A stretch of 64,000 nt of DNA from Monocercomonoides exilis PA203 (Eukaryota > Protista > Preaxostyla). The stretch spans positions 62,001-126,000 of the forward strand of contig LSRY02000031.1 of NCBI GenBank assembly GCA_001643675.2. Reading direction: 5' to 3'. The stretch's first letter is position 1. The number at the start of each line of letters is the position of its first letter. A program made the translations under genes and the position numbers. The notes under the pieces are model-generated. The model was not told the origin of the DNA. It made no database searches and saw only the letters and a list, made by a program, of their open reading frames with translations. This document shows, in pieces, positions 612-50,876 of the stretch.

Positions 612-1113
612 ATATGTTATTTCAATATTTTTATGTTTAATGAATAGGAAATTGATGATTTGAAAAAAATAGAAATATAAAAATACAATAAAAATATTCA
701 TTTTAAGGTCATGATTAAAATGAATAAAGAATCAATTAATCGTCGCTCCAATTTGATGCATTAGCACCATCAGAAATCTCATCACTTGAAGAATTGTCAT
801 CTTCTGGAACAGAAATATCATCAATATCATCTATATCAGGAACATCATTTTCGATTTCTTCTTCTTCTTCTATGATTTCTCTCTCATTTTCTCTTCCATA
901 GACGATATATCCCACTATATTCAAAGAAGATACTTTCAAAGTTTTTTCATACTCCCCAAAAAATGATTATTTCCAATATATTTCTCCCTTATGCCATGCC
1001 TTAAAAAAAATTCTCAGATGAGACCACATTCATTCTACTGCATTTGTGTATGTCTACGAAATTTGATCCACTTTACACTTTGAATGATTAAATGTTGGAT
1101 GAATGAAACCATG

Positions 1114-3787
1114 GGCATAGGTGTAACTGCGTCCCTTTTGCAATTCTTGTTTTTAACAATTAATTTTATGATGCTTGAAAAGCAAAAATTATTTATAAAC
1201 TTTTGTATGGACCGATTTTTCGTAAAACTTTTTGTTTGTCGTGAAAAAATTTATTTTAAAAATGACCCATAAATATGAGTATTTGAATAAAATTTTTAAA
1301 ATCAAAAACAAATAAATCCTGAAAAATATCTTGAATGTCTCTAAATGCATTGTACACTTATATTTGTTTGATATTTTCACGAAAAATATAAATTTGAAAT
1401 TTAATTTATTTATATGCAATCATTTGATCAAACCCATATTTTAATTTTATTTATTTGGACAACTTTAATTTGACGGTGCGGGTTATGCAATGTTCGAACG
1501 TATGTATTTGTTGTTTCTATATGTGATCATTATCAAATGCAAATTATACCAATTGTGTTCGTGTCAGAATATCCTGTTTCTGCTTTTTCAATTGCTAATA
1601 CAAGTTTCAAAGAAAAATCTTTGCTTTCAAAATCTTTCATTTCATAAAATGCTGTTGTACAATTGACACATTTATTTTCTTTGCACAAGACTGAAATGTG
1701 AAGCCAACATGTATTGCAAAATGACAAAATCACGTATTCAACAATCTGTTTGCAATTTATTTTGTTTGGAACATTTGTTATTTACTCTTATATTTCGTAA
1801 AGTACAAGGAAAAGATCATTCCTTTAGGAAGGAATGCAGGAGTTTTGATATTGATACATAGAAGCTAAATTGAAGGGGCATTATCAGATAAGAGCAAAGA
1901 AGGAGGAGCACTGAAGATCGTTCTGAAGAATGGAGGATTTATGGCACTTGAAAATAGTTCATTTGTTGGATGTGTTTGTCAGAATGGGAGTGAGGGTGGA
2001 AAAGGAGGAGGGATTTATCTGGATTGCAGCTCAAATGGAGAAGCATTTCACCTTTCATCGATATCATTTTCTGAATGCTCAGCAACAGTTGGGAAGAACA
2101 TGTTTGTGAAGAGTGGGAATCTGGTGAACAGTGTGAATACAGAACGTTTTGCATTTGATTGCACAGATTACGTGGAGGATGGGAATGCATTTGTTGGAGA
2201 AGATGGGATTTGTGGAGAAATGGATCTTCGAGTGTTTCTTGTTGAAATGAAGGGAATGGAGGTTTGTGTGTCAATGGAGGGGTATGACACATTGGGATGT
2301 GGAAGTGAAAAATTCCCATGTGAATCGATGAAAAGTGGAATTGACCACATTGACATGAATGGAGGGGAAGGAGAAAGGAAAGTGAAGGTTAAAGATGAAG
2401 GGATAATTGAAGATATTTATTCTTTCACAGATGCACTTGCGATTGATGGAAGTGTGATTGATGAAGATGAAACCAAACACAAGCCTGTTCAGTTTAATGA
2501 GAGAATCAAAGGGAATTCAGCATTTGCTTCATCTGTTATTTCTTCAACTGCCTCGCTCATCTTGCTGTCTTTGAAGTTACAAATTCCAAGTCAATTTGCA
2601 CCAATCATGAATTCATTGATATCATCGAGTAATATTCTTCAATTTGAAAACTGTTTATTTGAAATCCAATCATCAACGACCATTCAATACTCATTGATAA
2701 CCACAACCAGTGGAAGTTGCACATTGATAGGATGCAGTTTAATGGGATCTTCATTTGTCAAATCACCATTGGTGATGGCTACTTCTGTTTTATTTGAAAG
2801 CAACAACTTTTCAAACATTAGGAACACTGGAAGTGGTGAAGAAGGAGGCGTTGCAAAAGTTACATTAAAAAATGATGAAAATTTGGCTATTAAATCAACA
2901 AATGCATCATCTTGTTCACTTTCATCGGGCAATGGAAAAGGAGGATTCATGTATTTGGATTGTCAAAATTGCTTTGTATGAAAGAAGTTCTGAATTATTT
3001 TCATTCATAATTTTATTTTCCGTTTTTTCTCACTTCTTCACCCAATTTTTGTTTTTTAAGATAAATGCGATTTCAACAAATACAAGCAATTAAAAGCAGT
3101 TTTGAAAGATAAAGAAATATAAATGAATATTATTTGCTTGAAAAAGTGAAGTGAAAGTCACAAAAGCGATCAATATTGTGAATAAAAAGATTAGGAACAC
3201 CAACACTGGATATTCAAATATTCGGGATGTGAACTTCACAGTAACATAGGGTTGAACAACTAATAAATATAAAATCACAAGAAATAACACAAAAATAAAA
3301 ATGATTCAAAACTTGATAAAAACAAACAAAGACATACATATATATTTAAATAAAAAAACCATTTCATATGATTTATAGCATGACTAACGATTGTTAATAA
3401 CATAATGTTCACAAAATGATTATTTACACTAATTAAAGTTATCCAAATAAATTAAATTAAAATATGGGTTTGATCAAATGATTGCATATAAATAAATTAA
3501 ATTTCAAATTTATATTTTTCGTGAAAATATCAAACAAATATAAGTGTACAATGCATTTAGAGACATTCAAGATATTTTTCAGGATTTATTTGTTTTTGAT
3601 TTTAAAAATTTTATTCAAATACTCATATTTATGGGTCATTTTTAAAATAAATTTTTTCACGACAAACAAAAAGTTTTACGAAAAATCGGTCCATACAAAA
3701 GTTTATAAATAATTTTTGCTTTTCAAGCATCATAAAATTAATTGTTAAAAACAAGAATTGCAAAAGGGACGCAGTTACACCTATGCC
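1114..3787 (+). mobile_element. Non-autonomous cargo-carrying TIR transposon, copy 1 (Pack-type, probably Merlin-mobilised)
   Basis: 357-bp TIRs (1114-1470 and 3431-3787) begin GGCATAGGTGTAACTGCG. Exact 8-bp TSD AAACCATG at 1106-1113 and 3788-3795. No transposase inside. Second copy at 36518-39190. Confidence 0.95.
1941..2981 (+). CDS. Captured fragment (346 aa) of the large Cys/Gly-rich surface-protein family
   Basis: Uninterrupted ORF with family motifs GGKGGGIYLDC, GCGSEKFPC and GKGGFMYLDCQNC. Its 3' end is colinear with 13010-13140. No signal peptide or TM segment. Confidence 0.7.
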   Translation: MALENSSFVGCVCQNGSEGGKGGGIYLDCSSNGEAFHLSSISFSECSATVGKNMFVKSGNLVNSVNTERFAFDCTDYVEDGNAFVGEDGICGEMDLRVFLVEMKGMEVCVSMEGYDTLGCGSEKFPCESMKSGIDHIDMNGGEGERKVKVKDEGIIEDIYSFTDALAIDGSVIDEDETKHKPVQFNERIKGNSAFASSVISSTASLILLSLKLQIPSQFAPIMNSLISSSNILQFENCLFEIQSSTTIQYSLITTTSGSCTLIGCSLMGSSFVKSPLVMATSVLFESNNFSNIRNTGSGEEGGVAKVTLKNDENLAIKSTNASSCSLSSGNGKGGFMYLDCQNCFV

Positions 3788-5159
3788 AAACCATGATCCT
3801 TCAGACTGCTGTATGCACGTTATTTATCGCTCATTATTGTTGTTCCAGGATGGATATGAGATTTTTTTAGAGCAATAAGTGTTTTAGCACTTCTGTCAGT
3901 AACAATAAAAACAAATCTTCTTTTTGTTCTTTTCTTGTCTTCATTTCTTTCAATTCCTCCAAATATCCATATCTGCTTTTTTCTTCTTCCTCTCTTATAT
4001 TTTCTTCTTCTTCAAACTTGTTTGTCTGTTTCAACTGTTTTTCCAACACCACCTATCATGATAAAGTTTCGATCAATGATATTCATGCACTCAACAATTA
4101 AAACACCACTCTTATATCCCACAATTTTTGGATAAACTTCTATTATAAAGCTTATCTGAGCTTGCATTAGCCCTTGTCATAGTAATAAAACGATTAATAA
4201 AAATTTTACCAGACCAATTTTGTTGCTTTCTAATCTTGTATTTTTGAAAACTGTCCGTTTTTTGTTGCAATTGAAGCACATCCGATATCTGTAAGTTCCT
4301 TTTTCATTCAATAAAGCCAAACTCTTATGGTGAATAGTACACTCTTGATGTTTGTCTTGTTAAACAAATCGATAAAACCACTCCCAAGCCTTTTCTTCAT
4401 CAGTGAATGTTTTCAAAAGTTCAAAATTATGTTCCTTTTCATCTTCAGGAAAATCCATTTTCACTGAAATTTTTTTTGATCAAACTCACAAAACGTTGGT
4501 TTCACTCATTATCATATTTTTTTATTAAAAATATTGGTGATTATTTTTAAAATTATAACATTTTTCGGGGTGTTTATTTTTCTTTGATTGTTTGTCATTG
4601 GGAAGAGATTTTGAATTCAAATGTCGAATTCATCGCAACTGTTTTAAAAAACAAATGTGAGAGCTGAATTGAAGATATAGATGTCTTTTATAAGTCTTTC
4701 ACTTTTCAGTGTTCATTTACTGATTTTCACGGAAATATTTCGAATCGAAAATATTGAATGAAAAAATATATTTTGAAAAATAATTACCCATATACTAATC
4801 ATTTTCAAGCATTTTTAATAACATAAAGATTGTTGGAATACACTAATAAATATGTTGTAATAGAAAAATAAAAGTTTTGAGCACTTCGATATAATCCCAT
4901 TATCCCTTGGACTGCAACTGAACAAATTGAATCCTTCAAATAAATTATTCTGGAATATCCTCTTCAATAATGAATCCAATAAATGAAAAACTTAGCAGTC
5001 TTTTGTCGAAGCTTCTGATAAACCTTTTCCCAATTTCATAAATTATTTCTGACATTATAAAATAAAATTATATAAAATTAATATTTTATTTGCGCTTTTG
5101 AATAAAGAAGCACTTTTTTTCTGAGCTCACAAAAGTGGGAATTTTTGATTTTTGGTGAG

Positions 5160-8100
5160 TTGTATTTGAATGAAAAAACTTTTTAATCACGAAAAACTTG
5201 AAGAAAGTGGTTCGTCAATTATTGTTTTAAGCTCTTCCATGTATTCATCACCAGTTTTCTTTTATTTTTGTTCTTTTTTGAAGAGTCATGAAACACTGTT
5301 GTCACTTTTTTCTGCACTTTTTTCCACATGGCCAATCGATGTTCATCAATGTTTCAAATATTGGTAAAAAAACATCTCCAATATATCCAAAATACACAAA
5401 AGTTCCTCCAAGAGATGATATAAACATAACAGCTGACACTTTTATTGATCTTTGGGTGACAATTACAGTTTTATCCAGTTTCAGTTTGATATTCACGCCA
5501 AAACACATGCTGTAATGAAGATCAAACCTATCAACTGTGGAGCCATTTTGAAAAGAAATATGGTTAAGAAGATGACCTCTATTTTGATATCCTTTTTTAA
5601 TAAATTCATCTTTCCTAAAAATGGAATTGACAAGCTCCAATGTTATGTTTGTTGACTTTGAACCACTGAAAACGCTATTCAGTCCACTCACTGTGATTTC
5701 TTCAATTGAAGATAAATAATTGCCATTTTTAAGCACTTGTTTGTTTGTGTGGCTTTGTGTAGGAATAGCTGAGTCAATTGATGCAGAAACTTTTATTGCT
5801 CTGCAAGTGGCTTCCCTATCAGATGAAAACATTGAAAAGAGAATGGAATGGTAATCGCAAATATTGATATCAACATTACTTGCATCAATGGATATCAAAC
5901 AGTTTTTTGTTGGTGGATAAAAACTGTTGCTGGAATTATATTCAATACATTTTTGACTGAATGAATAATTCTTATTGTTGTTCGATCCATTGATTACCCC
6001 TTTTTCAAAAAGTCAAGAAATTCAAATGAATAATAAAAATGAAAAAAAAATAAACAAACCAAATGTATCAAACAAGGTCCTACAAATTCCCAATTTTTCT
6101 GAACACTCATTTAATTCATTGACACATTCGCCCGAGTAATCCATCAGTGTCAGATCGACTGTGAAATTTTCATTATTAATTTTTTTCAATTGAACATTTT
6201 TTTCCGAAGTTGCATCAACAGTTGTTTTTGTTTCCTCAATGTTGAATAGGGCAATTCCCAAAATATTGGAAATTATTGCACCCAACATAAAAAACAAGCC
6301 CACTATAGAAATAAATCCTCCAAATGTTGTCTTTTTTATCTGCTTAATACTATTAGGGTCAACTTTTTAATGGGACTTTTTCCCTTATTGGCACTTTTTT
6401 TGTTTTTGACTGCCAACTTTCAACAAACGTTGATTGGCTTTCAGTACTTCAAAAAACCTTTTTTACAAGTTTAACACAATTTATTAACAGTTTGTTTTTT
6501 AATTTTTGCTTATTACACATTGAGAAATTACGTTTTTTTGTTAAATTTGAAAGGACTTTTACCAGCCAACTAGGCAACGTCCAAGAAATTGGATACATGT
6601 TTTGAATAGCAAATACTATTATCTAACTACTTTTAAATTCTTTTTTTTCATAAACACTTTTTTCTTGTTTTTTTCACATTTCATTTTTTTAACAACATTC
6701 TAACATAAAACCGATTATTTCTTTGTTAATATAATGAAATGAAAAAAATAAAAATTTGATATGGAAAACAAATAGTCTAATAATAAAGTGTTGGAAAAAT
6801 GAAACATTAATTTTTACTATTTATCTGAAACGGACAAATGGCGCTAACTTAAAATAATCGATGATCAAGTTTTTGTAAAAAAGTTAAGTTCTTGACAAAT
6901 TGTAAAAATTAATGTTTCATTTTTCCAACACTTTATTATTAGACTATTTGTTTTCCATATCAAATTTTTATTTTTTTCATTTCATTATATTAACAAAGAA
7001 ATAATCGGTTTTATGTTAGAATGTTGTTAAAAAAATGAAATGTGAAAAAAACAAGAAAAAAGTGTTTATGAAAAAAAAGAATTTAAAAGTAGTTAGATAA
7101 TAGTATTTGCTATTCAAAACATGTATCCAATTTCTTGGACGTTGCCTAGTTGGCTGGTAAAAGTCCTTTCAAATTTAACAAAAAAACGTAATTTCTCAAT
7201 GTGTAATAAGCAAAAATTAAAAAACAAACTGTTAATAAATTGTGTTAAACTTGTAAAAAAGGTTTTTTGAAGTACTGAAAGCCAATCAACGTTTGTTGAA
7301 AGTTGGCAGTCAAAAACAAAAAAAGTGCCAATAAGGGAAAAAGTCCCATTAAAAAGTTGACCCTATGTGTATCTGGATCAAGAGAATCAACGTATTTATT
7401 CGAATAGCCATCAAGCTTCCATAAATACTTCTTTGATGGCAAGCAGAGGAAAAGAAAAGCAACAATTACACCCAATACTGTTGATGCTGAGTATGCAACG
7501 ATATTCGCTTTGAGTTCATCTTCAGAAGGGATTTTATACAACTCTGGTTTGCTGGATTTTAATGATTCAGTCAGAGGATTCTTATTTTCTCTTGAGGCTG
7601 AACCCATCGGGCAATAATCATTATCCGAACAATTTTCATATTTTTTCGAACAATTTTTTCCTGAAAAATGACCAACTGGAACCGGAATGCATGCAAATTT
7701 TTTGGAACCAGAGAAAAATCCATATGTTCCTTCTGGGCATGGAACACACTTTTTGTGACTGAATTCATTTGAATAATAACCAATTTCACAAAATTTACAT
7801 TCTCCATTAATTTCAACAGAACCTGAAGCGCAATCGAATGTGTCATTTTGAAGCTTGAATATTCTTAAAGTGTCAAGTGCCGAAGCCATTACTGTCCCAT
7901 TTTCATTGATCTGTCTCCCTCCAAAGCAGAAAACCTCTCGCTTTTGAACAGCGCATCCAGCTTCAACAACATCAAGATTCTTTCCATTAGAAAATATTGT
8001 TCCGTCATCTTCTGTCACAGATGCTGTTCCATTCTCATAAAATTTGACAACTTTTAAAGTGTTCACTGCCCTTCCATCGTTTATCCCTCCAAACATCAAT

Positions 8101-12538: not shown

Positions 12539-13009
12539 ATATATCTTTCAAAAAAAATATTTATAATGGAACGTAATTTTTTGATTTTTGAATTTTGTCC
12601 AAATGGATTAAACATGATAAGAATTTATGAAATGTACTTGAAATTGATTGATAAACTTTTTTGTTTAAAAAAGGCTTCTTTCGGATCATCGAAAGAACAA
12701 GAATAAATGGAAATAGCTAAGAAGACTAAAGTTTGAAACAATGCAAAAAATATTCATTTGTTATAAAAATGGAAAAGGCTCAATATGAAATATTTTCAAA
12801 GAGGAAATAGAGAATGTTCAAAAAAAAGAAAGAAAGAAAACACAAAAATCTTATTTTTTTGAATTATTTGGTAAACTGGAATTCAAACGAATGAAGACTC
12901 AAACATTCGGAGAAAAGTAATTGAAAATAATGACATTTTTCATATTCATTATTGTTAAATATAACAAAAAATTCCATTTGCGATGAACTGAAAAAGGAAC
13001 ATAAAAAAG

Positions 13010-16000
13010 GCGTTGTGAAAGTTATATTGCAGGTGAATGAAGAGTTGGTGATCAAATCAACCAATGCGTCATCTTGCTAACTTTCATTAAGCAATGGAAA
13101 AGGAGGGTTTCTGTGTTTGGGTTGTCAAAATTGTTTGAATGAAATACAATTTCTCTTTGATGTTGGTGTGACTTTTGAGAACAACAAAGCAGATATTGGA
13201 TAGAACATGCTCATTTTGGGAAAGGATTTTAATTCATCTGTGACAAATGAGTCATTTGCCTTCGATTATTCATCAATGATAAATGATGACAATTTGTTTG
13301 TAGGAAGTGATAACTTTCATTCAAATAAGGATTTGTTTATGTTCCTTATTCCATACAGCTCATTTGAGATATTTATCTCATTCAAAGGATTTGACGTTGC
13401 AAGACGTGGAAGTGAGGAAGAGCCTTGTTTCACAATGTGGAAAGGGATGAAAAACATGAAAAAGGAGAATAAAAAAAAAACAATTCAGATTGAAGGATCA
13501 ACTATTATTCGAGATTCATTCAACATGTCCAATTATCAGATCAAAAAGGGAGTAAAGATGGGAGAAGAAGATACAAAAGCGATATTGAATTTTGAAAAGG
13601 CAATTGGAAATCAACTGGAATATTTTATGGAAAATGATATTCATCTTGAATTGACGAATATCCAACTCCAACTGACAAATGAATTTGACAACTCAGCCAA
13701 AACAATTATTTCAAACAAAGGAGGAGATTTAGTGATATGCGAATGTTCATTCCATTCAGAAGCAAGAGCGAACAATGAATTTGATTGTGTGTTTGTGGAT
13801 GCGATTGGAGGCAGTGTGGAAGTGAATGAGTTGTCGATTGAATCATGCAATGTTGGAAATAGCATTTTTGCAATTAACAGTGCTGGAATAACTTGCCATT
13901 TTGTGAATGTTCGAGTGGAATCGTTGAATGAAAGTGGAGGATGTCTTCTTCTGATCAAAGGATCTGAATTAGCAACAAAGATGAATAAAGAAGGAATAAA
14001 TATTGAGATTGATAATTCATCATTTTCAGGAGTGAAGAGAAGTGATAATTGTGCAAGTGTTTTTGAATTGAAGAGTGAGAAAAAGATTTGTTTGATTGTG
14101 AATGAGGACGACATCACAGAAGACAAAGCAGAAACAAGTGAAAAAGGAGGAGCAATATTCTTCATATTGGGAATGTCTGGATCAATGAAGATGATTGACT
14201 CAATAATCACTAATTGCAACTGCAACTGCAACACAGGAAGGAGGAGGGGTGTATTTGGCAACAGATGAAAGAGGAGAATTGAATTTTTCATTTGTGGGGA
14301 TGAATTTCAGTGACAACTGTTCAAGTGTTGGAAATGATATTTTCATTGAATGTTTCAACATCACATCTCAAATCAATGAAAAACAATTCCAGTTTGATCT
14401 TCGAGAAGGTCATTATTCACGAATAAATGCGATATATGGAAGAGATGAATGCGATTATCCGAATGATACAGATCTGATTGAGTTTATCACCATTCATCAG
14501 AGCGACACAATTGTTGTGAGAAGTGTGGATGGATCGAATGACAAACAGTGTGGAACAAACTCACTTCCATGAAATTCTATTAATTATGAACTGATTCATC
14601 TGACTTTGGATTTCTTGAGCCAAATGTTCATTGTGGATGAAAACATGTTTAGCAGAGAGATTGATCCAAAGGAAATGAGTTTGAGCTCGAAGAATAGAGA
14701 CTTGTGCAACGTTGAAGTGAAAACAGATATTGAAAGCACAGGGGAAGCTTTGATAACATAAGTGGAACAGTTTCATTTGAGAGAGTGAACTTTGTATTTG
14801 ATTTGAATCACATTTTTTCACATGAATCACTGATATCTCCAGAGGGAGGAATTCTTGAAGTGATGAATTGCTCTTTTTCATCAAAGCAATTAATAGAAGA
14901 TGGAAATGAAGGTTTTGCGAGCATTCCATTTAACATTTTTAATATTGAAAAAGGAGAATTACAACTTATGGAATGCAAAGTGAAATATCAAATACTTCGT
15001 GAATCAGCGTTATATCTTTCATCTTCTCTTCCATCAGTAATTGATTCATTAACAATTTGCAATTCAACAATTAAAACTTCTTTGATAGATATTTATGAAT
15101 GTGGTCAAATAACAATTAAGGATTTCAATACAGAAAACATCACAGTTGAAGGAAATGAAGAATCATTGATATGTTACCTGTCAATGAAAAAGACGATGCA
15201 ATTGACAAATTGCACAATAAGTGGAATCTGTTCAAAAACCACAAAAGGAAAATTGATGAAAGTGGAGGATTGTTTGAATGTGAAAATGGACAGTTGCATT
15301 TTGGATGGAAGTTCAAAGGAAAGAAATGGGCAGTTTTTCAATGAGGGAAAAGAGATGTGCAGATGGTCAGGATCTCTTGTGGATGTTGTGAAAAGTTCGA
15401 TTTTTTATGAAAGATACAACAATCTCGAAATCACCAGAAGGTGGAATAACAATGAGTGGAGGAAATATGATAATTGAAGCAGGGAATATCTCAAATAATA
15501 ATCCATCAATTGAAGGATATCCATCATTGAGAAGAAACATCATCTGTTCAGATTCAGGAACATTGAATGTGATGAGTTTGAAAGGAGGAGATGGATTGAA
15601 GGAAAATTCTTCTCTTTGGATGCTGAATGATGGGTGCAGTTTTGAAGGGATTGTTTTTGAAAGAGCATCTCTATTTTTCATTCCAGTTTTGGTTGTGAAA
15701 CAGATTGGAGATAAAAGCAGATTGAAAAATATGTGTTCGATGAGAGTGGATATGTGTCAGAGACAGAGGCAGAAAGGAGAGTGCCAAAAGAGATGATAAC
15801 AGAAGCAGGAGAAGGGGTGGAAGTGAGTGTGTGCATTCAGTTTGGAGATGGCAATAATCCATCATCAACTGATTCTTTCATTCTGAAGAATACAAGCGAA
15901 GCAAAGGTGAATGGAGATGACAGAATTGCTGAAGGTGGAAAAGAAGGGAAATCTTATTGGTTGTTGATTGTGATTGCGATATTTGCTGTATTGTTTTTGG

Positions 16001-16491
16001 TTGTTCTAATTGTCTCCATCATATTCATTGTTCGATGGAGAAGGGCAAAAGAAGAAGCAAAAGATCTGAGAGAGATTGTGAATGATAACATCAGAAAGGA
16101 TCCGAAGCTGATTGAGATGGTGACGATGGAGATGTCACCTGAGGAGCAGTGGAGGAGAGCAGAGAGGGAGGCAGAGAAGAAGAATGAAGAGAGGATGAAG
16201 AAGAGAGTGTATGAGAAAACCTTGGGACATTCCGAGTCTTCAGAGCATCTTCTCTCTGAGAGTGGGTCAACTGAATACATTCTTGGAAGAGATTCAGACA
16301 AGATTCCTGATTGGGCTCTTGAGAAAGTTGAGGAAGAAGAAATTCAAAAGAGATCACCATCACCATCCATTTCATCCACTTCAACAACTGACTCAGATTC
16401 AACTTTTGTTCGGAGAGAGGATTTGTGCCCGACCGCCTCATCGATGTTGAATCTGGTGGGTGCAATGGCCTGTTCATCTTTTCATGATTAA
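13010..16491 (+). pseudogene. Large single-pass surface/receptor protein family member, frameshifted and 5'-truncated
   Basis: Overlapping ORFs 13207-14268, 14249-14572, 14785-15477, 15407-15796 and 15733-16491 with KGGAIF, CGTNSLP and YPSLRRNIICS. TM helix WLLIVIAIF..IVRWRR, then cytosolic EMSPEEQWRRAEREAE. Confidence 0.85.
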
Positions 16492-25288: not shown

Positions 25289-26748
25289 ATGCGTTTACAA
25301 GATGATGATAAATTTGAAAAAGGAGTTCAGACCATGACCAAAAGCGAGCAATTTTCAAGTTTGTTCTTTTATTTTGATTAAGTAGTTTTGAACAAATTTT
25401 TTATTTTTTGAATGCTTTTTGAAGAATTATTTTGTGATCTGGAATGTTGCAGAGAAGATGAACAAATGCAGGAAATAGAGGGAATGAATAGATTAATTGA
25501 GGAAATGAATAAAGAAGAATTCAAATCAGTTTTCACAGAGGAGCTGTTTAATAAAATAAACAAAATGATTGAAGAAGAGAAAATTATATTGGGAAACACA
25601 ATCTTGCTGTTGAAACATGTTGGATATTGCAAAGCAATGAAACGCTTTTATGATTTTGCATTTAATGATTCTTTTTTGAGTGATCGATTTCAGGAAATGA
25701 TCGTTGATGAAAATGAAAGGAAAAAAGAAGAAAAGAACGAAAAGCTTCTGATCAATCTCTGTGAATGTTTTACTTTGCTGAATGATGATGACATTTCAGA
25801 TGAATTACGTTCAATCGCTGTGCCTCGCCTTCTGAAAGCTGCGTCAGACAAAGATGAAAGCGAGAAGACTCGAAAAGAAGTGGAAATAGCTTTGCTGGCG
25901 CTGAGCAACATTAACAAATATATTGTTTGAACACTTCTTTTTCCTTTTTGACGTTATTGAATTGTTTTTTCCCGCCTTATTTTTGATAGAAAGTGAAACA
26001 AGAACTGTATTTAAAGGAAATTACAGAAATCATCAAACATCAACAGAAACATAGAAATCTTACGCATCTGGCCTTTCAATCTGCTTGGCAATTTTTAATT
26101 AATAAATTTTTCAAAGATAGAAATTTGGAAGATACAATTGCGAATGAGCTGCATTTCGCGAGAGAAGCAGCAAGAGAATTGGATGAGCTTTCAAAGTGTG
26201 TTGATTGGAAGAGAAAGAAAGACGAGGAAAGAAGAGGAAAAGAAATGAAAAAAGTGCATATTATCAGGAGGTGGCTCGATGTAATTAATACTTACTTTAC
26301 TTGGTGCACATTGTGGAACGAGGAATGGGAATGGCTTATCCGCAGCCTTGTTCTGGTGTTTCGAGAAGCAAAGGATAATTACAGAGACATAGGCCATCAA
26401 TGCATTTTGTGCATTAGAAGAACAGCAGAAAACAGAGCTGAAATTAAAGACTTGTTGGAGAGTGGGGCAATTGATCTCATTTTGGAGGAAATCCAGCAAG
26501 CAATGTTTGATAACATAATGACATTTAATGGCTTGTTATTTTTATTGAATGTTACAAAGAAATTGAAAGAAGGCAATGACGAAATGATGAAAGTGAAAAA
26601 AAAGGCTTCCAAAAGGAAGATATTTGAAAAGATGGAGGAAGAAGGTTATGATGATGTTATCATTAACTTTTATGAAGTGATTTCTTTTCATGACAGATAC
26701 TATCGTGGATTATCAAATAATATTTCTGATTATTTTGTGAATATTTGA
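25289..26748 (+). CDS. Helical hypothetical family protein (copy B), 3 exons, 442 aa, intact
   Basis: Exons 25289-25358, 25425-25924 and 25990-26748 join in frame via GT-AG introns of 66 and 65 nt. Family motifs present. Confidence 0.85.
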
Positions 26749-27881
26749 GGAAATGAAATTCTGCGATAATTCTGTTTCTCTGAATAACAATATTTCTTTT
26801 TGGATTATTTCCTTCATCAGTTAACTATTATATGCTGTATTTTCATTTGAAAATTTTTATTGAATTGTTTTATGGATAATCAACTGATTATGTGAATGCT
26901 TGATGAAATGAAACTCCTTTGATTTCAAAACTCTGAATCGACATTTTTCTTTTTTTTTCTCAATATTTCAAAAAATAATTGATTGGAGAACTTTTATTGA
27001 TGTTTTTGTTTCCTTTTAAAAAAATGGGAAAAAAAAGAAAGAAAAATGAAAATTCTTTTCAATTCGTTGAATGGATTATTACACTCCATCATTTTCAACA
27101 AGATTCATGTTGAGCAATGAATTCAATTGTTCAGTTTTTGCCTCTTGAAGCCTCTGGTCTCCTTTGCTTATTCCCTTTCTGATTATATTCTCAATGAACA
27201 AGAAAAGGCGAAGGAGAAGAATCCAAAAGAAATGAAGAAAGAAATGTTAGTTGAAGAAATCTGTTATCAACTTCTTATGTGCAAAATGTTACAGAAATAA
27301 ATCCGATAACAAAGAAGAAAAATGAAAACCTAAGTCAAAAACTGCTTGACTGAAACAAGTCAATCTCAATCGAATTCTATCTCTGTTTTTCTTTCTCTTT
27401 TCCTCAAAAATCTTCAATAGAAGTTCCTCTCTTTTTTGTTTCATTGACCTTCTCTTCCATTCCATTCATCATCTGAAAGTTACTCAATCCCAATTCATCT
27501 GAGTTATGTGTCGTCTTCTTTGACGAAACGAATGAAGAAGAAGAAGAAAAGGAAGATCACAATTGTTGAAATAAAGACAGATGCTATGTGAATGTTTGAA
27601 TTAGTGAGGGAGAGTGTGTGAGTGAAGTCAAAGTGGAATATGAGAATGAGAAGATTGAACGAAATGAATGAAGAGCACACAATTTTTGTTGAATATTCTT
27701 CAAATTCAAGTGAAAATGTTGATTCTATGCGAATTTTTTTCATTTTTCTTTTCTCTTTCTATTTGTTTTTTTGTTCATTTTCAGCCATCTTTCTTCTTCA
27801 TCTCATTTTTCTCTTCTTCTTCAAATTTTCTTCTTTTCTGAGACAACAATGAAATGAATGGAAATGTGTAGAATATTCCAT

Positions 27882-29280
27882 CTACAGATGCATTAAATAT
27901 TCAGAAGGGATTTTTGATAATTCACGATAACCATTTTCGTTAACAAAAGAAATGAATCCACAAAAACTTGCAATGATATCTTCAAATCCATCTTTTTCCA
28001 TCTTTTCAAATATCTTCCTTTTCAACACTTTTCGTTTGGTTTCATCCGTTTCTCCATCCGTCTTTTTTTTCAATCTTTCTGAAATATTCAAAAAGAAATT
28101 CAAGCCATTCTGAATAATATCATCATCCAAAGTTGATTGCTTCATTTCTTCTGAAAATAAAACTATGATACCTTCCTTTGCAAAAGTATCAATTTTCGCT
28201 TTTTTCTTTTCTATCGCTCTTCTTAATGAAGAAAGGCAAAGATGGCATGTATATGGGTAATTATCTCTTGATGATTGATATGTCTGAACAATGCTTGCAA
28301 TCAGCCCAACAAAGTCGTCGTTCTGCAATGTGCTTGAATCGAAGAAATCACAAACCTCAAAGAGCCATCTCCCGATAATATGCGCTTCTTTTTCTCCATT
28401 TTCTTCTTCTTTCTTCTTCCAATTCACGCACTTTGTCAGCTCTTCCAGTTCTCTTGCTGCTTCTCTCGCAAAATGTAGCTCATTCACAATAACTTCTTCC
28501 AAGTCGTCATCATTGAAGAATCTGCTCATTAAAAATTTCCAGGCAGTCTGATAGGCAAGTCGAGTGAGGTTTCGATGTTCCTGGTGATATTCGATGATCT
28601 CCTTGATTTCCTTTAAATACAGTTCTCTTTTCATTTCCTATGCAAAAAAGGAGGAAAAAACAATTCAATAACGTCAAAAAGGAAATGGAAGTGAGCATAC
28701 ATAACATGTGCTAATGTGACTTAAAGCCAGCAATGCTATTTCCGCCTCTTTTTGCGTTTCCTCATTTTCCTCTTTATTCAAGGCAACTTTCAGAAGGCAA
28801 GGCACACAAATTGATATCAATTCATATGGACACCTATGGATAAGCAAAGCAAAACATTCGCAGACATCAATCAAATGCTTTTCATCTTTTTTCTTCCCGT
28901 TTTTATCAATCAATATCTCTCTCATTCTTTTGCTCAATAATGAATCATCAAAAGAAAATAATAAAAAGAACTTCAATATCTTGCAATATCCAACATGCTT
29001 CAACAGCAAGATTGCATTTTCCAATGATAATGTCTTTATCTCAATCATTTGGTGAATTTTATTGAATAGTTCTATTGTGAATACTGTTAGTAATTCTTCT
29101 TCATTCATTTCATCAATTAATCCATTCATTTCCTTGATTTTCTGCATTTGTTCCTCCTCATCGCACTTTTCAAGTCCATCAAACAATGCTTCAAAATTTT
29201 AAAGAAAGAAAGAAATGCAATTGCCAAAAATTCAAATGCAGCAATGGACGCAAACAAGTGAACTTTTCGGTGACACTCAT
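27882..29280 (-). CDS. Helical hypothetical family protein (copy C), 3 exons, intact
   Basis: Exons 29280-29256, 29188-28701 and 28637-27882 join in frame. Intron positions and phases match copy B. Confidence 0.8.
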
Positions 29281-32689: not shown

Positions 32690-33670
32690 TTATTTGCCAA
32701 CTTTCTTCACCTTCTTCAGAAGACCCATCGCGTTGTGTGTCCTCTTGTAGGGCATCTTTGATGTCCAACAATACATTGCTTTGATGCCAAGATGACCATC
32801 CACGCATTCATTGTCAGCTGTACGCCCGTTGAGAAATATAAACAAATCGACATTCCAATCACCGAATGCTTCTGTTCTGTCATGTCCAACAACCGAGTTG
32901 TCTTTCTGAGTGATGTTTCCCATGAAGGCGAACAAGGGCTCTTTCACAGAAGCGACAAATGATTCGCACACAAAATACATATCTCTTCCGACACAGGCCT
33001 TGTTGGCTGAAAACACGATATTGGTGATGGAAAAGGTTGTGGATGACACTTGTGAATCATCGTTGTACTCGATCATGAGAGCACCGCCTCTTCCTCCAGA
33101 ACTTGTAACCTCGCTCACAAAGCAGGTGGAGAAGATGGTGTTGCTTACTGAAAATGTGTTGGCAGGGGCAGATGACGCGTATGAGATGCATCCGCCATTG
33201 GTGGCAGTTTGTTGGCTCAACTGTTCTGAGTTGATGTTGGTGATGGTGCAGTTGGCGAGGGAGAGGGAGAGGGCAGGGGAGGTGGCAGAGGAGAGGACAC
33301 AGCTGGCGGGGGTGGCTGTGGAGGTGATGTGAGTGATGTTGGAGGAGTTGAGGGTGAGGGGAGCTGTGAGGGAGGTGAGGTGGAAGATGCTTTGGCTCTT
33401 GAGGATGAGACTGGTGATTGCTGTGTGGTTGAGGGCGAGGGAGCCAGCAGTGAGGAAGAAGAGGGGGGTTGTGATTGACGATGAAGATGGGGTTGTTCCG
33501 GTGATGGTGGTTGTGTTGAGGTTGAGGGAATGGGAGTTTTGGGAGAGTTGGAAGAGGATGGGAGTAATGGGATTTGAGGAGTAGTGTGCGATGGAAAGGG
33601 CAGAGACTGTGAGGGAGCCCTTGGTTTGTTGGAAGAGGGAGGAAGATGCAGTGGATCGTGTGAAGATGGT
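32690..33670 (-). pseudogene. Fragment of Thr/Ser-rich beta-helix-like surface protein, paralog of 49153-50876
   Basis: LFQQTKGSLTVSAL..TPLFFLTAGSL..ATSPALSLSLANCTITNINS..NGGCIS..GRGGALMI is nearly identical to 50350-50870 and continues past the point where that copy stops. Confidence 0.75.
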
Positions 33671-35596: not shown

Positions 35597-36517
35597 ATAT
35601 GGAAAAATGATGAATATTAAAAAGAAAAATTGACAAGTTCTAATAAAAAATTATTATGCAAAAAGTGATAGATATTCCTCCTCATTCTTTAAAAAATGAA
35701 GTTATTAAAGAAGTCAATGTGTTTCCAGGATTAAGCCTTTTCTTCATTTTCGTAAAATATCTAGCATTTGCTATCTTTTTTGCTTCTTTTCTTTCCAAAT
35801 AATCTTTTGTCATTTCATCCAAAAATCTTATATTTTATTCTGAATCTATTTCCATGAGAGGGAAATGAAGAATTAGAAAATTTGTTAGACAACTAGCAAC
35901 AGAAAAATAATCAACGATTTTTTCTATTTCAAAAACCCATTGTCTTCGAAAAACGGTGAATATAATTTTGAGAAGATTTAAAAATTGTCCAACAATCACT
36001 CTGACAAAAGTCATCTTAGGAGTTTCGATTTGTTTTGTGATAATTGCTCCTAATTCAGGCTGTGATCCAATATAAGCATAATCTGCGATTATTTTTGCAC
36101 ATTCAAATTGTGCTTGAAATATCGGATATTGATTCAAAAAAAATTAACTATTTGTGTAGAAGCAATAAATATGAAGCTAATCGTTTGAACAGTTCCAATT
36201 CTGGGATTCACTCCCACCTCTGCATTTTTATAATACATATGATGTTAGCCAGAAAAATTTTTCTCTCCGTTCTCAATATTTCTTCAAATCCAATTGATTG
36301 GTGTAACAGCTTAATCAACAATAATTCCAGTTTGTTCAAAACCAACAATTTCGTTGAGAAGAAAAGATTGAAACAAATGAGCCAGATTGTTTTTGGCAGA
36401 AAAAGTTGAACGGAATAGGCGAATTGTTGTTGATTGGGAATCTTCTTTTGGTTGTGTTTTCAAATGTGTCAAAGAATAAGATCCATGAAGAATGATATTC
36501 AGTTGTGAGAAAAGATG

Positions 36518-39190
36518 GGCATAGGTGTAACTGCGTCCCTTTTGCAATTCTTGTTTTTAACAATTAATTTTATGATGCTTGAAAAGCAAAAATTATTTAT
36601 AAACTTTTGTATGGACCGATTTTTCGTAAAACTTTTTGTTTGTCGTGAAAAAATTTATTTTAAAAATGACCCATAAATATGAGTATTTGAATAAAATTTT
36701 TAAAATCAAAAACAAATAAATCCTGAAAAATATCTTGAATGTCTCTAAATGCATTGTACACTTATATTTGTTTGATATTTTCACGAAAAATATAAATTTG
36801 AAATTTAATTTATTTATATGCAATCATTTGATCAAACCCATATTTTAATTTTATTTATTTGGATAACTTTAATTAGTGTAAATAATCATTTTGTGAACAT
36901 TATGTTATTAACAATCGTTAGTCATGCTATAAATCATATGAAATGGTTTTTTATTTAAATATATATGTATGTCTTTGTTTGTTTTTATCAAGTTTTGAAT
37001 CATTTTTATTTTTGTGTTATTTCTTGTGATTTTATATTTATTAGTTGTTCAACCCTATGTTACTGTGAAGTTCACATCCCGAATATTTGAATATCCAGTG
37101 TTGGTGTTCCTAATCTTTTTATTCACAATATTGATCGCTTTTGTGACTTTCACTTCACTTTTTCAAGCAAATAATATTCATTTATATTTCTTTATCTTTC
37201 AAAACTGCTTTTAATTGCTTGTATTTGTTGAAATCGCATTTATCTTAAAAAACAAAAATTGGGTGAAGAAGTGAGAAAAAACGGAAAATAAAATTATGAA
37301 TGAAAATAATTCAGAACTTCTTTCATACAAAGCAATTTTGACAATCCAAATACATGAATCCTCCTTTTCCATTGCCCGATGAAAGTGAACAAGATGATGC
37401 ATTTGTTGATTTAATAGCCAAATTTTCATCATTTTTTAATGTAACTTTTGCAACGCCTCCTTCTTCACCACTTCCAGTGTTCCTAATGTTTGAAAAGTTG
37501 TTGCTTTCAAATAAAACAGAAGTAGCCATCACCAATGGTGATTTGACAAATGAAGATCCCATTAAACTGCATCCTATCAATGTGCAACTTCCACTGGTTG
37601 TGGTTATCAATGAGTATTGAATGGTCGTTGATGATTGGATTTCAAATAAACAGTTTTCAAATTGAAGAATATTACTCGATGATATCAATGAATTCATGAT
37701 TGGTGCAAATTGACTTGGAATTTGTAACTTCAAAGACAGCAAGATGAGCGAGGCAGTTGAAGAAATAACAGATGAAGCAAATGCTGAATTCCCTTTGATT
37801 CTCTCATTAAACTGAACAGGCTTGTGTTTGGTTTCATCTTCATCAATCACACTTCCATCAATCGCAAGTGCATCTGTGAAAGAATAAATATCTTCAATTA
37901 TCCCTTCATCTTTAACCTTCACTTTCCTTTCTCCTTCCCCTCCATTCATGTCAATGTGGTCAATTCCACTTTTCATCGATTCACATGGGAATTTTTCACT
38001 TCCACATCCCAATGTGTCATACCCCTCCATTGACACACAAACCTCCATTCCCTTCATTTCAACAAGAAACACTCGAAGATCCATTTCTCCACAAATCCCA
38101 TCTTCTCCAACAAATGCATTCCCATCCTCCACGTAATCTGTGCAATCAAATGCAAAACGTTCTGTATTCACACTGTTCACCAGATTCCCACTCTTCACAA
38201 ACATGTTCTTCCCAACTGTTGCTGAGCATTCAGAAAATGATATCGATGAAAGGTGAAATGCTTCTCCATTTGAGCTGCAATCCAGATAATTTCCTCCTCC
38301 TTTTCCACCCTCACTCCCATTCTGACAAACACATCCAACAAATGAACTATTTTCAAGTGCCATAAATCCTCCATTCTTCAGAACGATCTTCAGTGCTCCT
38401 CCTTCTTTGCTCTTATCTGATAATGCCCCTTCAATTTAGCTTCTATGTATCAATATCAAAACTCCTGCATTCCTTCCTAAAGGAATGATCTTTTCCTTGT
38501 ACTTTACGAAATATAAGAGTAAATAACAAATGTTCCAAACAAAATAAATTGCAAACAGATTGTTGAATACGTGATTTTGTCATTTTGCAATACATGTTGG
38601 CTTCACATTTCAGTCTTGTGCAAAGAAAATAAATGTGTCAATTGTACAACAGCATTTTATGAAATGAAAGATTTTGAAAGCAAAGATTTTTCTTTGAAAC
38701 TTGTATTAGCAATTTAAAAAGCAGAAACAGGATATTCTGACACGAACACAATTGGTATAATTTGCATTTGATAATGATCACATATAGAAACAACAAATAC
38801 ATACGTTCGAACATTGCATAACCCGCACCGTCAAATTAAAGTTGTCCAAATAAATAAAATTAAAATATGGGTTTGATCAAATGATTGCATATAAATAAAT
38901 TAAATTTCAAATTTATATTTTTCGTGAAAATATCAAACAAATATAAGTGTACAATGCATTTAGAGACATTCAAGATATTTTTCAGGATTTATTTGTTTTT
39001 GATTTTAAAAATTTTATTCAAATACTCATATTTATGGGTCATTTTTAAAATAAATTTTTTCACGACAAACAAAAAGTTTTACGAAAAATCGGTCCATACA
39101 AAAGTTTATAAATAATTTTTGCTTTTCAAGCATCATAAAATTAATTGTTAAAAACAAGAATTGCAAAAGGGACGCAGTTACACCTATGCC
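36518..39190 (-). mobile_element. Non-autonomous cargo-carrying TIR transposon, copy 2
   Basis: Reverse complement of 1114-3787 (2673 vs 2674 bp, about five differences seen). Its own 8-bp TSD AAAAGATG at 36510-36517 and 39191-39198. Confidence 0.95.
37323..38363 (-). CDS. Captured surface-protein fragment (346 aa), copy 2
   Basis: Identical to the 1941-2981 product except GIY to GNY. Confidence 0.7.
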   Translation of the reverse strand: MALENSSFVGCVCQNGSEGGKGGGNYLDCSSNGEAFHLSSISFSECSATVGKNMFVKSGNLVNSVNTERFAFDCTDYVEDGNAFVGEDGICGEMDLRVFLVEMKGMEVCVSMEGYDTLGCGSEKFPCESMKSGIDHIDMNGGEGERKVKVKDEGIIEDIYSFTDALAIDGSVIDEDETKHKPVQFNERIKGNSAFASSVISSTASLILLSLKLQIPSQFAPIMNSLISSSNILQFENCLFEIQSSTTIQYSLITTTSGSCTLIGCSLMGSSFVKSPLVMATSVLFESNNFSNIRNTGSGEEGGVAKVTLKNDENLAIKSTNASSCSLSSGNGKGGFMYLDCQNCFV

Positions 39191-40202
39191 AAAAGATGTT
39201 CATCAAACGAGTTGATAGATTTTGTTTCACCTCTTCGTGAATATTCATACGGAGAAAGAAATCGAATCCGTCTATCAAACTGTGTTCGGAAAAATCATGT
39301 GAAATGATCGAACCTAAAAGATGGATCGGTTAACTTTTGAAAAGCAATATCGATGATTAATTTCTTTTCTTTTCTTTTCTTCAAAATAATGAGGAATTGC
39401 ATTTCTTTACTCCTTTTTTCCAAAACTTCCAACAATGGAATTTGCGACATAATTGTTAATGATAATAAAAGGTGACGAACATAATCACCCATATGTCGAA
39501 TTTTTTTTATTAAGTTCCTTCTGTTTAATTTTCAGACAAAATAAAAAATTTCATATTTTTATCAATTTTCTTCTCCCACTAACCAAATTTCGCTGTCATG
39601 AAAAAATTATCTCAACAATGTTATTATTTCCATTCTTGAAAAGTTTCGTGAGAGGAAACAGAAATTTGATCGAAATATAAAAATATTTCTGTATTTGAAA
39701 AATTTTACAAAATGAACTTTTCAAAAAAATTTAGACATATTTCATTATAATTCTTAATGATCCTTGAACACAGAATTGTCACTAATTGCTAAGAATTAAT
39801 CAATTCAAATTGGAACAAATGTTACTGGCGTTTTGTGAAACTCGAAAGGACTAGCTTGTGCAAATACCATGAGAAGAAATAAAAATGTTTCAGTAAAAAC
39901 CATTAAGTTATTGTGCGCAACTTTTTCCTACATTAATTTTTTTTGTTAATAATAAAAAATTTTATCAAATCTCTCTTTTTTCAAACATTCAAAAAATTGA
40001 TCTTAAAAAAAAAATTTGCAAAAAATAAAAATAAATAAAAAACAACAAATTTAAAAAATTAGTGCATATAATCCTGTTTCATATATGTTTTTCGTGTTTC
40101 ATTTTTTTTATGCATTAATCAAACATGTTCAATAAATGGTTAAAGATCATTACAAAATCATTTTCATTTTTAGGTTTTTTATTTCGAAGAGTAATTTAAA
40201 AC

Positions 40203-47005: not shown

Positions 47006-48079
47006 TGATACAATGAGTAAAATACGCGGAACATGGTAAAAAACCCGGAATTTTTATTAAAATTCATATATCTCGACAAGTTTAAAAAATTAATTTATAA
47101 AAATTCACACATTCACACATCAGTATATAACACATCTAACCATATTGAAATTTTTATTTATTGCGCTGTATTTATGAAGAAATAAATAATTTTTATTTTT
47201 GAAAATCTGACTTTTGATGAATTTTTCTATTTCAACAAAACGATTCAGTTCATCTTTTAAATATATCCCTTATTTTTTTTGTTGAAGATTTTTCTGATTA
47301 TTTTTCATTTTTGGCAATTTGCTCGTTTGGACTGAATAAAAATCTGTTATTTTCAAAAAATCACAGTCAATGGGATGACTTAAAAAAATATTTTATGCAA
47401 AACACGAGAGCATCCAAGTGAATTAAACACATGCAATAATAAATATGACAGTTATAAAAAATTGATTCATTGTTGAAATTTAAAATGATACAGAAGGTAT
47501 TTCAAAAATCAAGATTATTTTCATAATTGATGGTTGATAATGATCATTTTTGTTGAGTTTTCTACCAAATTGTATTTATCAAAATGAAAATGGAATTATT
47601 TTAAATTTCAACAATGAATCAATTTTTTATAACTGTCATATTTATTATTGCATGTGTTAAATTCACTTGGATGTTTTTGTGTTTTGCAAAAAATATTTTT
47701 TAAGTTATCCCATTGATAATGATTTTTCAAAAATGATAATGTTTTTTTTCGTCAAAAGGAGCAACTTGCCGAAAATGAAAAATAACCAGAATTATTTATA
47801 ACATAGAAAAAATAAGTTTTATATATAAAAGATGAACTGAATCGTTTTGTTGAAATAGAAAAATTCATCAAAAGTCAGATTTTCAAAAATAAAAATTATT
47901 TATTTCTTCATAAATACAGCGCAATAAATAAAAATTTCAATATGGTTAGATGTGTTATATACTGATGTGTGAATGTGTGAATTATTATAAATTAATTTTT
48001 TAAACTTGTCGAGATATATGAATTTTAATAAAAATTCCGGGTTTTTTACCATGTTCCGCGTATTTTACTCATTGTATCA
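47006..48079. repeat. ~1.07-kb foldback inverted repeat
   Basis: Arms ~47006-47486 and ~47598-48079 (TGATACAATGAGTAAAATACGCGG / CCGCGTATTTTACTCATTGTATCA), ~110-bp spacer. No clear TSD. Confidence 0.9.
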
Positions 48080-49152
48080 ATAAAAAATATTTTGCTTTAA
48101 ATTCTTAAAAAATTTTCTCATTTTCTTCATATTACAGTTTCCACTCTCAAAATATCTCAAGAATGATATTATTTGCAACATCAAGTTTTTGTTTCCAATA
48201 GATACAACGCATATTGGATCACATAATTTAAAATGAAAAATTAATTAAAAATTGTTGGGGTTATTAAAAAAAAACTACTGTTTATTTGAATTGACTGGCA
48301 AATTTTTAAAATACACAAGCAATTATGAATTGAATGTTTTAAAATTGAAAAAGAATAATATTAAATAATAAACAGAAAAGATTTTTATAAAATACTGAAG
48401 TTAATTTTGATTTTCTTTTTGATTATATTTTGATCTTTCAATAATCAACTTCGAAAAAATAGAATAATTCGATAATTCGTTTAAAACGCTATTCCAACTT
48501 ATGTTATCAGAAACATGAGCTTTATAATGCGAGTTTGAATGGTTATAACAATTATAAATTCGTTTTTCCCAATATACAAATCATGAATGCATCTGATTAC
48601 TTTCAGTTTTTTTCTTCGCAATTGTGAACTGTTTCTTTAAAACTGAAGCACCAACAACAACTTCTGTTCCATTATGCTCAGTCATCATTGGTAATTACTG
48701 CTTATTTCGTTCTTAGCAACAGCAATTTTCAAACAATATTGTTTTTTATTTTTCGCCTTGCTGAAAAACAATATTATGAAATATAAACAAGAAATATTTA
48801 AAACATTGAATGTTTAAAGGTGTATATGCTTCTTTTTCAAATTTTCGTTTTTAATAAAGAATATTTTATATTTCAACAAATTTTTCTTTTTCGATATTTT
48901 TCTTCTTATTTTGCAGATCACACAATTTTCTTATATGTTCCGAATTCAATAGACATTTTGTTTTTTGATGCTCCATATTTTTGACTCTCTTCATCCTCAG
49001 GATTACTCTTAAGTGCAAATAAAATTTCGACTATCCCATCTATTTATTTTCTCTCGTCTAAATTAACAGATTTCTATTCCAGCACGCTCAAACTATCATC
49101 AACAGTTCTATCTTCTCTTCTATTTACAGCTCCGACACTTTTTTCTCTGCCT

Positions 49153-50876
49153 TTGACACCTCCTTTCTTCGCCAAACCAGCTCTACACCAAATGCTCCTG
49201 TTGAACACACCGGAAATGAATCTCAAAGAAAATCACCTGGAAGATTGGCCACTTTTGATGAGAACAACCATCGCTTTGAGTGGTGTGAATGGAATGATTC
49301 AACTGGTTGCTCATCATCTGGTGGTGCACTTTATGTTGCTTGCACGAATGCCAATCTCACAATCACTTCCTGTTCATTCAACAATTGTTCAACAAGTGAT
49401 CATGGAGGAGCGTTATATTGCGATTATTTGTTAAAAGTTGATATCGCAAAATCCAATTTCACGAGTTGTTCAGCTGCTCATGCAGGAGCTGCTTATTTGT
49501 ATTGCAATCAACCTTATTCTGTTTGGACATTCTCAGATAACAGAGTGGAAAGTTGCTCAATAACAGATTGGTGTGGAACTGGTTGGAATTTCTGGCTCAA
49601 TAATATGCCATCAAATGCTCAATTCCTGTTTTCCAAATGTTAGTGTATCGCAAATTCTGGTGGTGATTCTGCTGGCTCTCTCACATTTCATTGGCCTCCA
49701 CAAAATAAACCAAGTCAGTTTTCAATCATTGAGTGTCAGTTCATCAGGAACAATCTGACTGCCTCTTCCACTTATGGTGGCGCTGCTCTATGTTGCACAA
49801 ACACCTTCACTTGGATGAGTGGAGTTAAATTCATCACATTCTGTTTCTTCGATGGAAATACAGCAGAAAATGGCAGGGGAAATGATGTGTTTTTCAATGG
49901 CAGCAGCATAACCCAATCACCATTCAATCAGTGTGGATCAACAACAGAATCAAAAAGAGTGTGGAATGCAGGAACAGCTGACAATGCAGTGTATAATGGC
50001 TGGCTCCCTCTCATTGCCCAGAACAAAATCGTTGCCAGCAATGGAACCAATACAGATGGTTGTGGCAGACCCCAACAGACCCCATGTGCCACCATCGAGT
50101 ATGCCCTCAACGGCTTCATTTCCCTCATCCAAGATGCCTCCCTCACCCTCCTCACCTCAACATTTGTTCCTCTTCAAACACTAACCTTCAGCGTGGTTGA
50201 TTCAAAAATCACTGGAAATGGAACAGATACCACCACCATCGCCTCCAGTGGCATTCCCCAACCACCAAACTCACATTCACAATCATCACAATCAACATCA
50301 TCATTTTCATCATTTTCATCATTTTCATCTGCATCTTCTTCACCAGATCCATCTGCCTCGTCTGCCCTCTTCCAACAGACCCAGGGCTCCCTCACAGTCT
50401 CTGCCCTCGCCATCTCCCACAACTCATCAAACCAAATCACCCCCATCCTCTTCCACCTCTCCGGAAACTCCCCTTCCCTCAACCTCAACACAACCACCAT
50501 CACCGGAACAACCTCCATAACAATAAAAACACCCCTCTTCTTCCTCACTGCTGGCTCCCTCTCCCTCAACCACACAGCAATCACCAGTCTCACCCTCAAC
50601 AGCCAAAGCATCTTCCACCTCACCTCCCTCACCGCTCCCCTCACCCTCAACTCCTCCAACATCACCGATATCACCTCCACAGCCACCCCCGCCAGCTGTG
50701 TCCTCTCCTCTGCCACCTCCCCTGCCCTCTCCCTCTCCCTCGCCAACTGCACCATCACCAACATCAACTCAGCTCCACAACACCAACAGACTGCCACCAA
50801 TGGCGGGTGCATCTCATTCGCCTCATCCGCCTCTGCCAACTCGTTTTCGGTGAGTGATTCAGCCTTCTCCACCTGA
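49153..50876 (+). pseudogene. Beta-helix-like (GGAL-motif) Thr/Ser-rich surface protein pseudogene
   Basis: GGALYV, GGALYC, FCFFDGNTA..GNDVFF and CGRPQQTPCATI motifs. In-frame TAG at 49641, and TGA at 50874 where the paralog has Cys; then truncated. Confidence 0.8.

Follow-up and report, generated by a model that had tools for sequence, protein, structure and literature searches.

The element at positions 1114-3787 of the window (the 64,000-nt stretch of Monocercomonoides exilis PA203 contig LSRY02000031.1, positions 62,001 to 126,000, that was analysed here) is a real, recently mobile, transposase-less Merlin transposon. Its interior holds what homology indicates is a fragment of the host's tyrosine-kinase-like (TKL) receptor family. 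The explanation that we favour, and consider likely, is that this is a non-autonomous Merlin element with a receptor-kinase passenger that was captured once, that it is mobilised in trans, and that its cargo has been overwritten by host paralogues.

Structure and recent movement of the element

Copy A, as we refer to the element at 1114-3787, is 2,674 bp long and is flanked on both sides by an 8-bp target site duplication (TSD). The arms of its terminal inverted repeats (TIRs) are 357 nt long, with 2 mismatches by script count and 99% complementarity in the repeat finder, and its termini, GGCATAGG...CCTATGCC, have GG ends. Neither the ORFs nor tblastn with a Merlin transposase revealed any transposase similarity inside 1114-3787, and host coding sequence makes up 43% of the element. 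A second copy, copy B, lies further along the window, which belongs to contig 27 (C27) of the assembly. The features of both copies and of the target site of copy A are as follows.

1012-1113, minus strand: downstream half (about residues 225-259) of a stop-ridden Merlin transposase pseudogene, split by copy A; from tblastn and the reconstructed empty site
1106-1113, no strand: left TSD of copy A, AAACCATG; the same 8 bp recurs at 3788-3795
1114-1470, plus strand: left 357-bp TIR (inverted-repeat arm), which begins GGCATAGG
1471-1823, plus strand: AT-rich element-specific spacer, not derived from a host gene; genome-wide only in the C27 (two), C91 and C57 copies
1824-2983, plus strand: cargo, a 1,160-bp fragment assigned by homology to a receptor-kinase (TKL) ectodomain, host residues about 1203-1586
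1941-2981, plus strand: 346-codon ORF within the cargo
2984-3430, plus strand: element-specific spacer; only in five copies, C27 (two), C91, C57 and C13
3431-3787, minus strand: right 357-bp TIR (inverted-repeat arm)
3788-3795, no strand: right TSD of copy A, AAACCATG
3796-4050, minus strand: upstream half (about residues 141-228) of the same Merlin transposase pseudogene; from tblastn and the reconstructed empty site
36510-36517, no strand: TSD of copy B, one side, AAAAGATG
36518-39190, minus strand: copy B, 2,673 bp, inverted relative to copy A, TIRs with 1 mismatch
39191-39198, no strand: TSD of copy B, other side, AAAAGATG

Copies A and B are 99.81% identical and differ by four substitutions and one homopolymer indel in an A-run. 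Their identity ends exactly at the TIR ends, and the flanks past the TSDs are unrelated. When the Merlin transposase was used as a tblastn query, minus-strand matches were found directly on either side of copy A, and the empty site of this copy was reconstructed in silico by deleting 1114-3795, that is, the element and one TSD. The deletion turned the two flank matches into one ungapped 120-aa alignment over transposase residues 141-259, and the E-value of the match between flanks and transposase went from 7.5e-7 before excision to 6e-13 after it. Because excision merges the flank matches in this way, we conclude that the insertion of copy A was precise and that its target was an old Merlin transposase pseudogene, riddled with stops and from another family. 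The rejoined sequence at the empty site of copy B held nothing recognisable.

One might ask whether the two copies are instead an inverted segmental duplication, or an assembly artefact, that arose with no transposition at all: a single Nanopore-based contig holds both, just 35 kb from each other, and a homopolymer indel is among their differences. But a duplicated segment would not be expected to stop at the TIR ends or to give each copy its own perfect 8-bp duplication amid unrelated flanks, nor would its excision in silico restore a continuous transposase pseudogene, as that of copy A does. We reject segmental duplication on the differing TSDs, the unrelated flanks and the seamless empty site of copy A, and consider an origin by duplication or artefact extremely improbable. 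Two 99.8% identical copies that share the same cargo and have different TSDs also indicate mobilisation after capture, one of the features of Pack-TYPE elements, and the element is young and probably still mobile.

A preliminary description of this DNA had reported 357-bp TIRs that start with GG, an 8-bp TSD and the absence of a transposase, and had proposed that the unit is a non-autonomous, Pack-type gene-fragment element that moved recently by transposition. All of this stands: the repeat finder, the script and the sequence ends agree on the TIRs and the TSD, the ORFs and tblastn agree on the missing transposase, host coding DNA lies inside, and the near-identical copy with its own TSD, together with the seamless empty site, bears out the recent movement.

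Other inverted repeats are present in the window. A foldback element at 6347-7372 has two 479-nt arms that are 99% complementary, lie 68 nt apart and start GGGTCAAC; a 31-nt stretch of it is 74% like part of the Merlin TIR, and it is possibly a TIR-only derivative of another family. At 135-615 there is a MITE-like pair with 139-nt inverted arms (87%) and GGGGC/GGGGA ends. Two further inverted-repeat pairs, at 47006-48079 and 25797-28828, differ in their termini from the present Merlin family; the arms are 273 nt long at 98% in one pair and 185 to 259 nt at 76% in the other.

Transposase-encoding partners with shared termini

Genome searches covered the assembly of 82,301,135 bp in 101 contigs, and the best 40 candidates per query were scored. 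With the TIR as query, 155 candidates were found, several of them as pairs spaced about 8.2 kb. The first 171 bp of the TIR are about 92% identical to those of 8.2-kb transposase-encoding elements, with no difference over the terminal 20 nt. In one such element, on C40, a central 381-aa ORF matches PF12762 DDE_Tnp_IS1595 (E=2e-21, with 77 bits where the cut-off is 27). Residues D149, D214 and E252 of the partner transposase do not vary when it is aligned with 8 relatives, which are eukaryotic Merlin-like and bacterial IS1595 proteins. The closest public match of this transposase is 'ISXO2-like transposase [Monocercomonoides exilis]'. The ORF is intact in three 8.2-kb partners, at 98.4-100% identity, and 8-bp TSDs were verified on four large TIR-sharing elements. 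No matching TSDs were found for the 7-kb pair on C57 or for several other TIR pairs, which are probably old or recombinant.

Merlin elements are known by GG termini and by TSDs of 8 or 9 bp (PMC8101967, citing Feschotte 2004), and the window element has GG ends and an 8-bp TSD at both copies. The Merlin label that the preliminary description had proposed from these features is upheld by the partners, which have the same termini, encode an IS1595-type DDE transposase and make 8-bp TSDs. That description had also called for the autonomous partner to be classified; by PF12762 and the DDE triad it is Merlin, neither Mutator nor hAT. The shared termini suggest that the 8.2-kb Merlin elements move the window element in trans.

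The autonomous element on C40 (L031, C40:438304-447522) has TIRs of about 2.0-2.7 kb, and both arms contain the transmembrane and kinase-domain end of the host family. At two other loci, host kinase-family sequence lies outside a Merlin TIR terminus: at L030 (C52:362561-365751) it abuts the terminus directly, and at L026 (C25:1203232-1206402) about 190 bp separate the two. Such copies may have inserted into a family member or next to one, which would make them possible raw material for capture.

The captured receptor fragment and its mosaic history

In the genome search, host homology of the internal part of the element was confined to 1824-2983, and the cargo matched at least 185 host loci at 80-88% nucleotide identity. 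All 15 of the host loci examined are open over their full 4.1 kb. One host gene, at C36:891295-900402, consists of an open frame of 3,036 aa whose N-terminus is hydrophobic and whose C-terminal part holds a PF07714 kinase domain (E=4.8e-11). The cargo protein is 77-78% identical to residues 1203-1586 of this frame. It is also 24-31% identical to three other segments of the same protein, spaced about 320-380 aa. Because similar segments recur at this interval, it is fair to speak of about one repeat period, and the earlier view that the cargo amounts to roughly one period of the receptor family agrees with the match to residues ~1203-1586 and the ~320-aa period. The tyrosine-kinase-like family is the largest in the M. 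exilis genome (PMC6759080), and, judged by its homology, the cargo is a piece of the ectodomain of this receptor family. The neighbours of the cargo ORF in a feature search (Atlas) were right-handed beta-helix and Chlam_PMP-like proteins, which point to a beta-helix-like ectodomain. There was no Pfam match for the 346-aa cargo ORF, and AlphaFold2 on an 11-row cargo alignment gave a pLDDT of 36.5.

An in-frame TAA at 1866-1868 interrupts the captured host frame, so the 346-codon ORF is the remainder of that frame and not a whole unit. Public databases list this ORF as a protein, which is probably an artefact of transposon cargo. The preliminary description had contrasted 346 stop-free codons with frameshifted relatives resident in the window. 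The ORF at 1941-2981 is indeed open, but its frame is cut upstream, and the contrast is without weight because relatives genome-wide are intact giant ORFs. Among the residents is a receptor-kinase family pseudogene at 13003-16488, which covers host residues ~1544-2735 with four frame changes. Short fragments of the family lie at 32726-33652 (minus strand, host residues 717-1023) and 49137-50915 (plus strand, host residues 325-909). Positions 33226-33651 and 50353-50772 are inverted repeats at 87-96% with copy B in between, and the two short fragments could be arms of a larger composite element.

The spacers at 1471-1823 and 2984-3430 are found genome-wide in just five copies, C27 (two), C91, C57 and C13, and the junctions between cargo and spacer are identical across the copies of this sub-family. 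Since both junctions are common to the copies and the spacers occur in only these five, we conclude that there was one capture. The C13 copy, which is older than the window element, has a standard Merlin left end; its host fragment starts about 130 residues further upstream, and in this it is like a 13-kb element on C61. The C61 element holds more of this host region, and its piece begins at a point of its own, although cargo extents of the large elements on C61, C7, C8 and C25 are known from 3-kb end loci only. From the longer fragments on C13 and C61 it follows that the window element is a further-truncated derivative and that its one-module boundary is secondary, so this boundary does not appear to have been built into the element. 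Different parts of the receptor family are found in further elements of this TIR family, among them the autonomous ones, which hold them inside TIRs of 2-2.7 kb. In the sub-family copy on C57 (L035, C57:415805-423828) the spacer is enlarged by an insertion of 4.3 kb that includes a low-complexity ORF of 343 aa; the flanks of this copy showed no matching TSD.

Although the copies share their junctions, their cargoes have not diverged in step with the rest of the element. Between the C27 element and the C91 and C57 copies, the TIRs are 95% identical and the spacers 87-92%, whereas the cargo is just 81% identical. The cargoes do not form one clade in a tree; that of C13 has as its sister, at 100/100 support, a host gene located 63 kb from it. 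Over 180 bp the C13 cargo is 99-100% identical to this host neighbour. When compared in 120-bp windows, the cargoes of C91 and C57 show 98-99% identity at either end but diverge in the middle, where each is nearest to different host genes, and for the C27 cargo a host gene is nearest in almost every window. Searches for a donor with the whole cargo and with its three thirds (40 best candidates per query) found best host genes of no more than 88%, 87% and 90% identity. A different host gene was closest to each third and none exceeded 90%, so no single donor can be named. The dN/dS ratio is 0.38 from cargo to cargo and 0.34 from host to host, and this gene-like value implies that the differences were imported from genes under selection rather than accumulated by neutral drift since one capture.

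We infer from these sequence comparisons that the cargoes have undergone patchwise gene conversion from host genes. For C27, it is the discordant divergence and the dN/dS ratio that suggest conversion, and not an identified tract. The tract that C13 has in common with its host neighbour looks like host genes and not like other elements, which argues that conversion ran mainly from host to element, and conversion from host genes explains the open frame without any need for selection. On C13, L043 (C13:1135014-1139609, with the cargo) and L053 (C13:1199280-1203399, an intact host gene) share tracts of 98-100% identity against a background of about 85%, which by their sequence represent recent conversion between transposon and gene.

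It is also conceivable that no conversion took place and that related elements independently captured different host paralogues. One might then expect cargoes that are not monophyletic, as we see, and other elements with the same TIRs do carry other pieces of the host family, while the piece of the cargo region on C61 has boundaries of its own. Independent captures would have had to reproduce both junctions, however, and these match base for base among the copies, as do the adjoining element-specific spacers; nor is a pair such as C91 and C57, 98-99% identical at the cargo ends and divergent only in mid-cargo, a pattern that separate captures would be expected to leave. We regard this history as very unlikely.

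Under the favoured explanation of a single capture followed by conversion, the lineage of the element would once have acquired a piece of about 1.2 kb from the beta-helix-like ectodomain of a giant receptor kinase (TKL), and would either have lost its transposase or never have had one. The 8.2-kb Merlin elements with shared termini would mobilise it in trans. A very recent transposition within 35 kb gave rise to the two copies with different 8-bp TSDs, one of which landed in the old Merlin transposase pseudogene. Homology to about 200-300 host paralogues would let ectopic gene conversion overwrite the cargo patch by patch, for instance through a switch of template while an excision is being repaired.

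Does the cargo do anything for the cell? It could be expressed as a 346-aa protein, or read-through of the cargo and of the TIR hairpin could yield small RNAs that regulate receptor kinases. Nearly all family-invariant residues are kept over the 346 open codons, the ORF carries its annotation as a protein, copies A and B are mutually inverted, and the genome has at least four Piwi-domain (Argonaute-type) genes, which make small RNAs from the element possible. Yet the cargo ORF has no signal peptide despite its ectodomain origin, the captured frame is already stopped at 1866-1868, the sister-copy cargoes carry 1-3 stops, and the sub-family numbers just five copies. The substitutions private to the C27 cargo also fit neutrality: their ratio of nonsynonymous to synonymous changes is 21:7, compared with a neutral expectation of 3.4:1 and 1.7:1 for the hosts pooled, in a test of low power (p=0.29 against the hosts). 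With about 28 neutral changes, each with a 5.5% chance of creating a stop, roughly one premature stop is expected, and one is seen, at 1866-1868. Since the private ratio is near neutral and the stop count is as expected, the 346-codon frame needs no selection to explain it. We consider a functional cargo doubtful, and infer that it is a passenger.

These comparisons bear on two further readings. An open frame cannot be taken as evidence of selection when the private changes are 21:7 against a neutral 3.4:1. The role in shuffling modules that the preliminary description had proposed is without support as well: there are five copies, the genome search showed no chimeric loci, with the element-specific spacers in no locus beyond those five, and sequence appears to have flowed from host gene to element.

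Relation to known transposons and significance

The closest likeness is to the Pack-TYPE elements of plants (Pack-MULE, Pack-CACTA, Pack-hAT, Pack-PIF and Pack-Mariner; PMC8903248, PMC6379663), which are likewise transposase-less TIR elements with a host fragment and a TSD; there too, elements were mobile after capture and a new copy landed locally, within 100 kb. Here, by contrast, the element is a Merlin in an oxymonad protist, a single hugely expanded family supplied the cargo, which appears to have been overwritten by its paralogues, and the autonomous elements also carry host fragments, inside kilobase-long TIRs. Merlin is unmentioned in the plant Pack-type papers, genome-wide survey and 2026 review (PMC8903248, PMC6379663). 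Ordinary deletion-derivative DNA transposons and MITEs similarly keep the termini needed for mobilisation in trans, but differ from the window element, which is 43% host coding sequence.

Merlin has been described from Monocercomonoides sp. PA203, with more than 100 copies in at least 7 families and a DDE_Tnp_IS1595 transposase (PMC8101967). Those families share the genome, the 8-bp TSDs and the GG termini with the window element, whereas their TIRs are given as 23-29 bp, compared with 357 bp to about 2.7 kb here, with host gene fragments. The terms non-autonomous, MITE, cargo, host gene and kinase do not occur in the text of that paper, and a literature search pairing Merlin with Pack-MULE or gene capture found no report. 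Merlin in M. exilis is already published, then; the literature search brought up no case of gene capture by Merlin.

Capture of gene fragments by cut-and-paste transposons has been documented mainly in plants and in other superfamilies; here it concerns Merlin and an amitochondriate protist. About 35% of the M. exilis genome has been classed as 'unclassified repeat', which overlaps kinase genes (PMC8767320), and a gene-carrying Merlin helps to explain this. Annotation of transposon cargo as genes is probably the artefact behind short 'hypothetical proteins' like the 346-aa model. Conserved TIRs around a cargo that appears to have been overwritten make these copies a clear natural record of how ectopic gene conversion acts on a mobile element. 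We find it tempting to speculate, though we think it unlikely, that the Merlin elements are mobile members of the receptor-kinase conversion network, with a cargo that is rewritten and that may donate tracts back. If this were true, transposition would carry ectodomain variants between chromosomes and speed the diversification of the largest gene family, and such transposon-assisted receptor variation would be a route undescribed for Merlin or for any protist.
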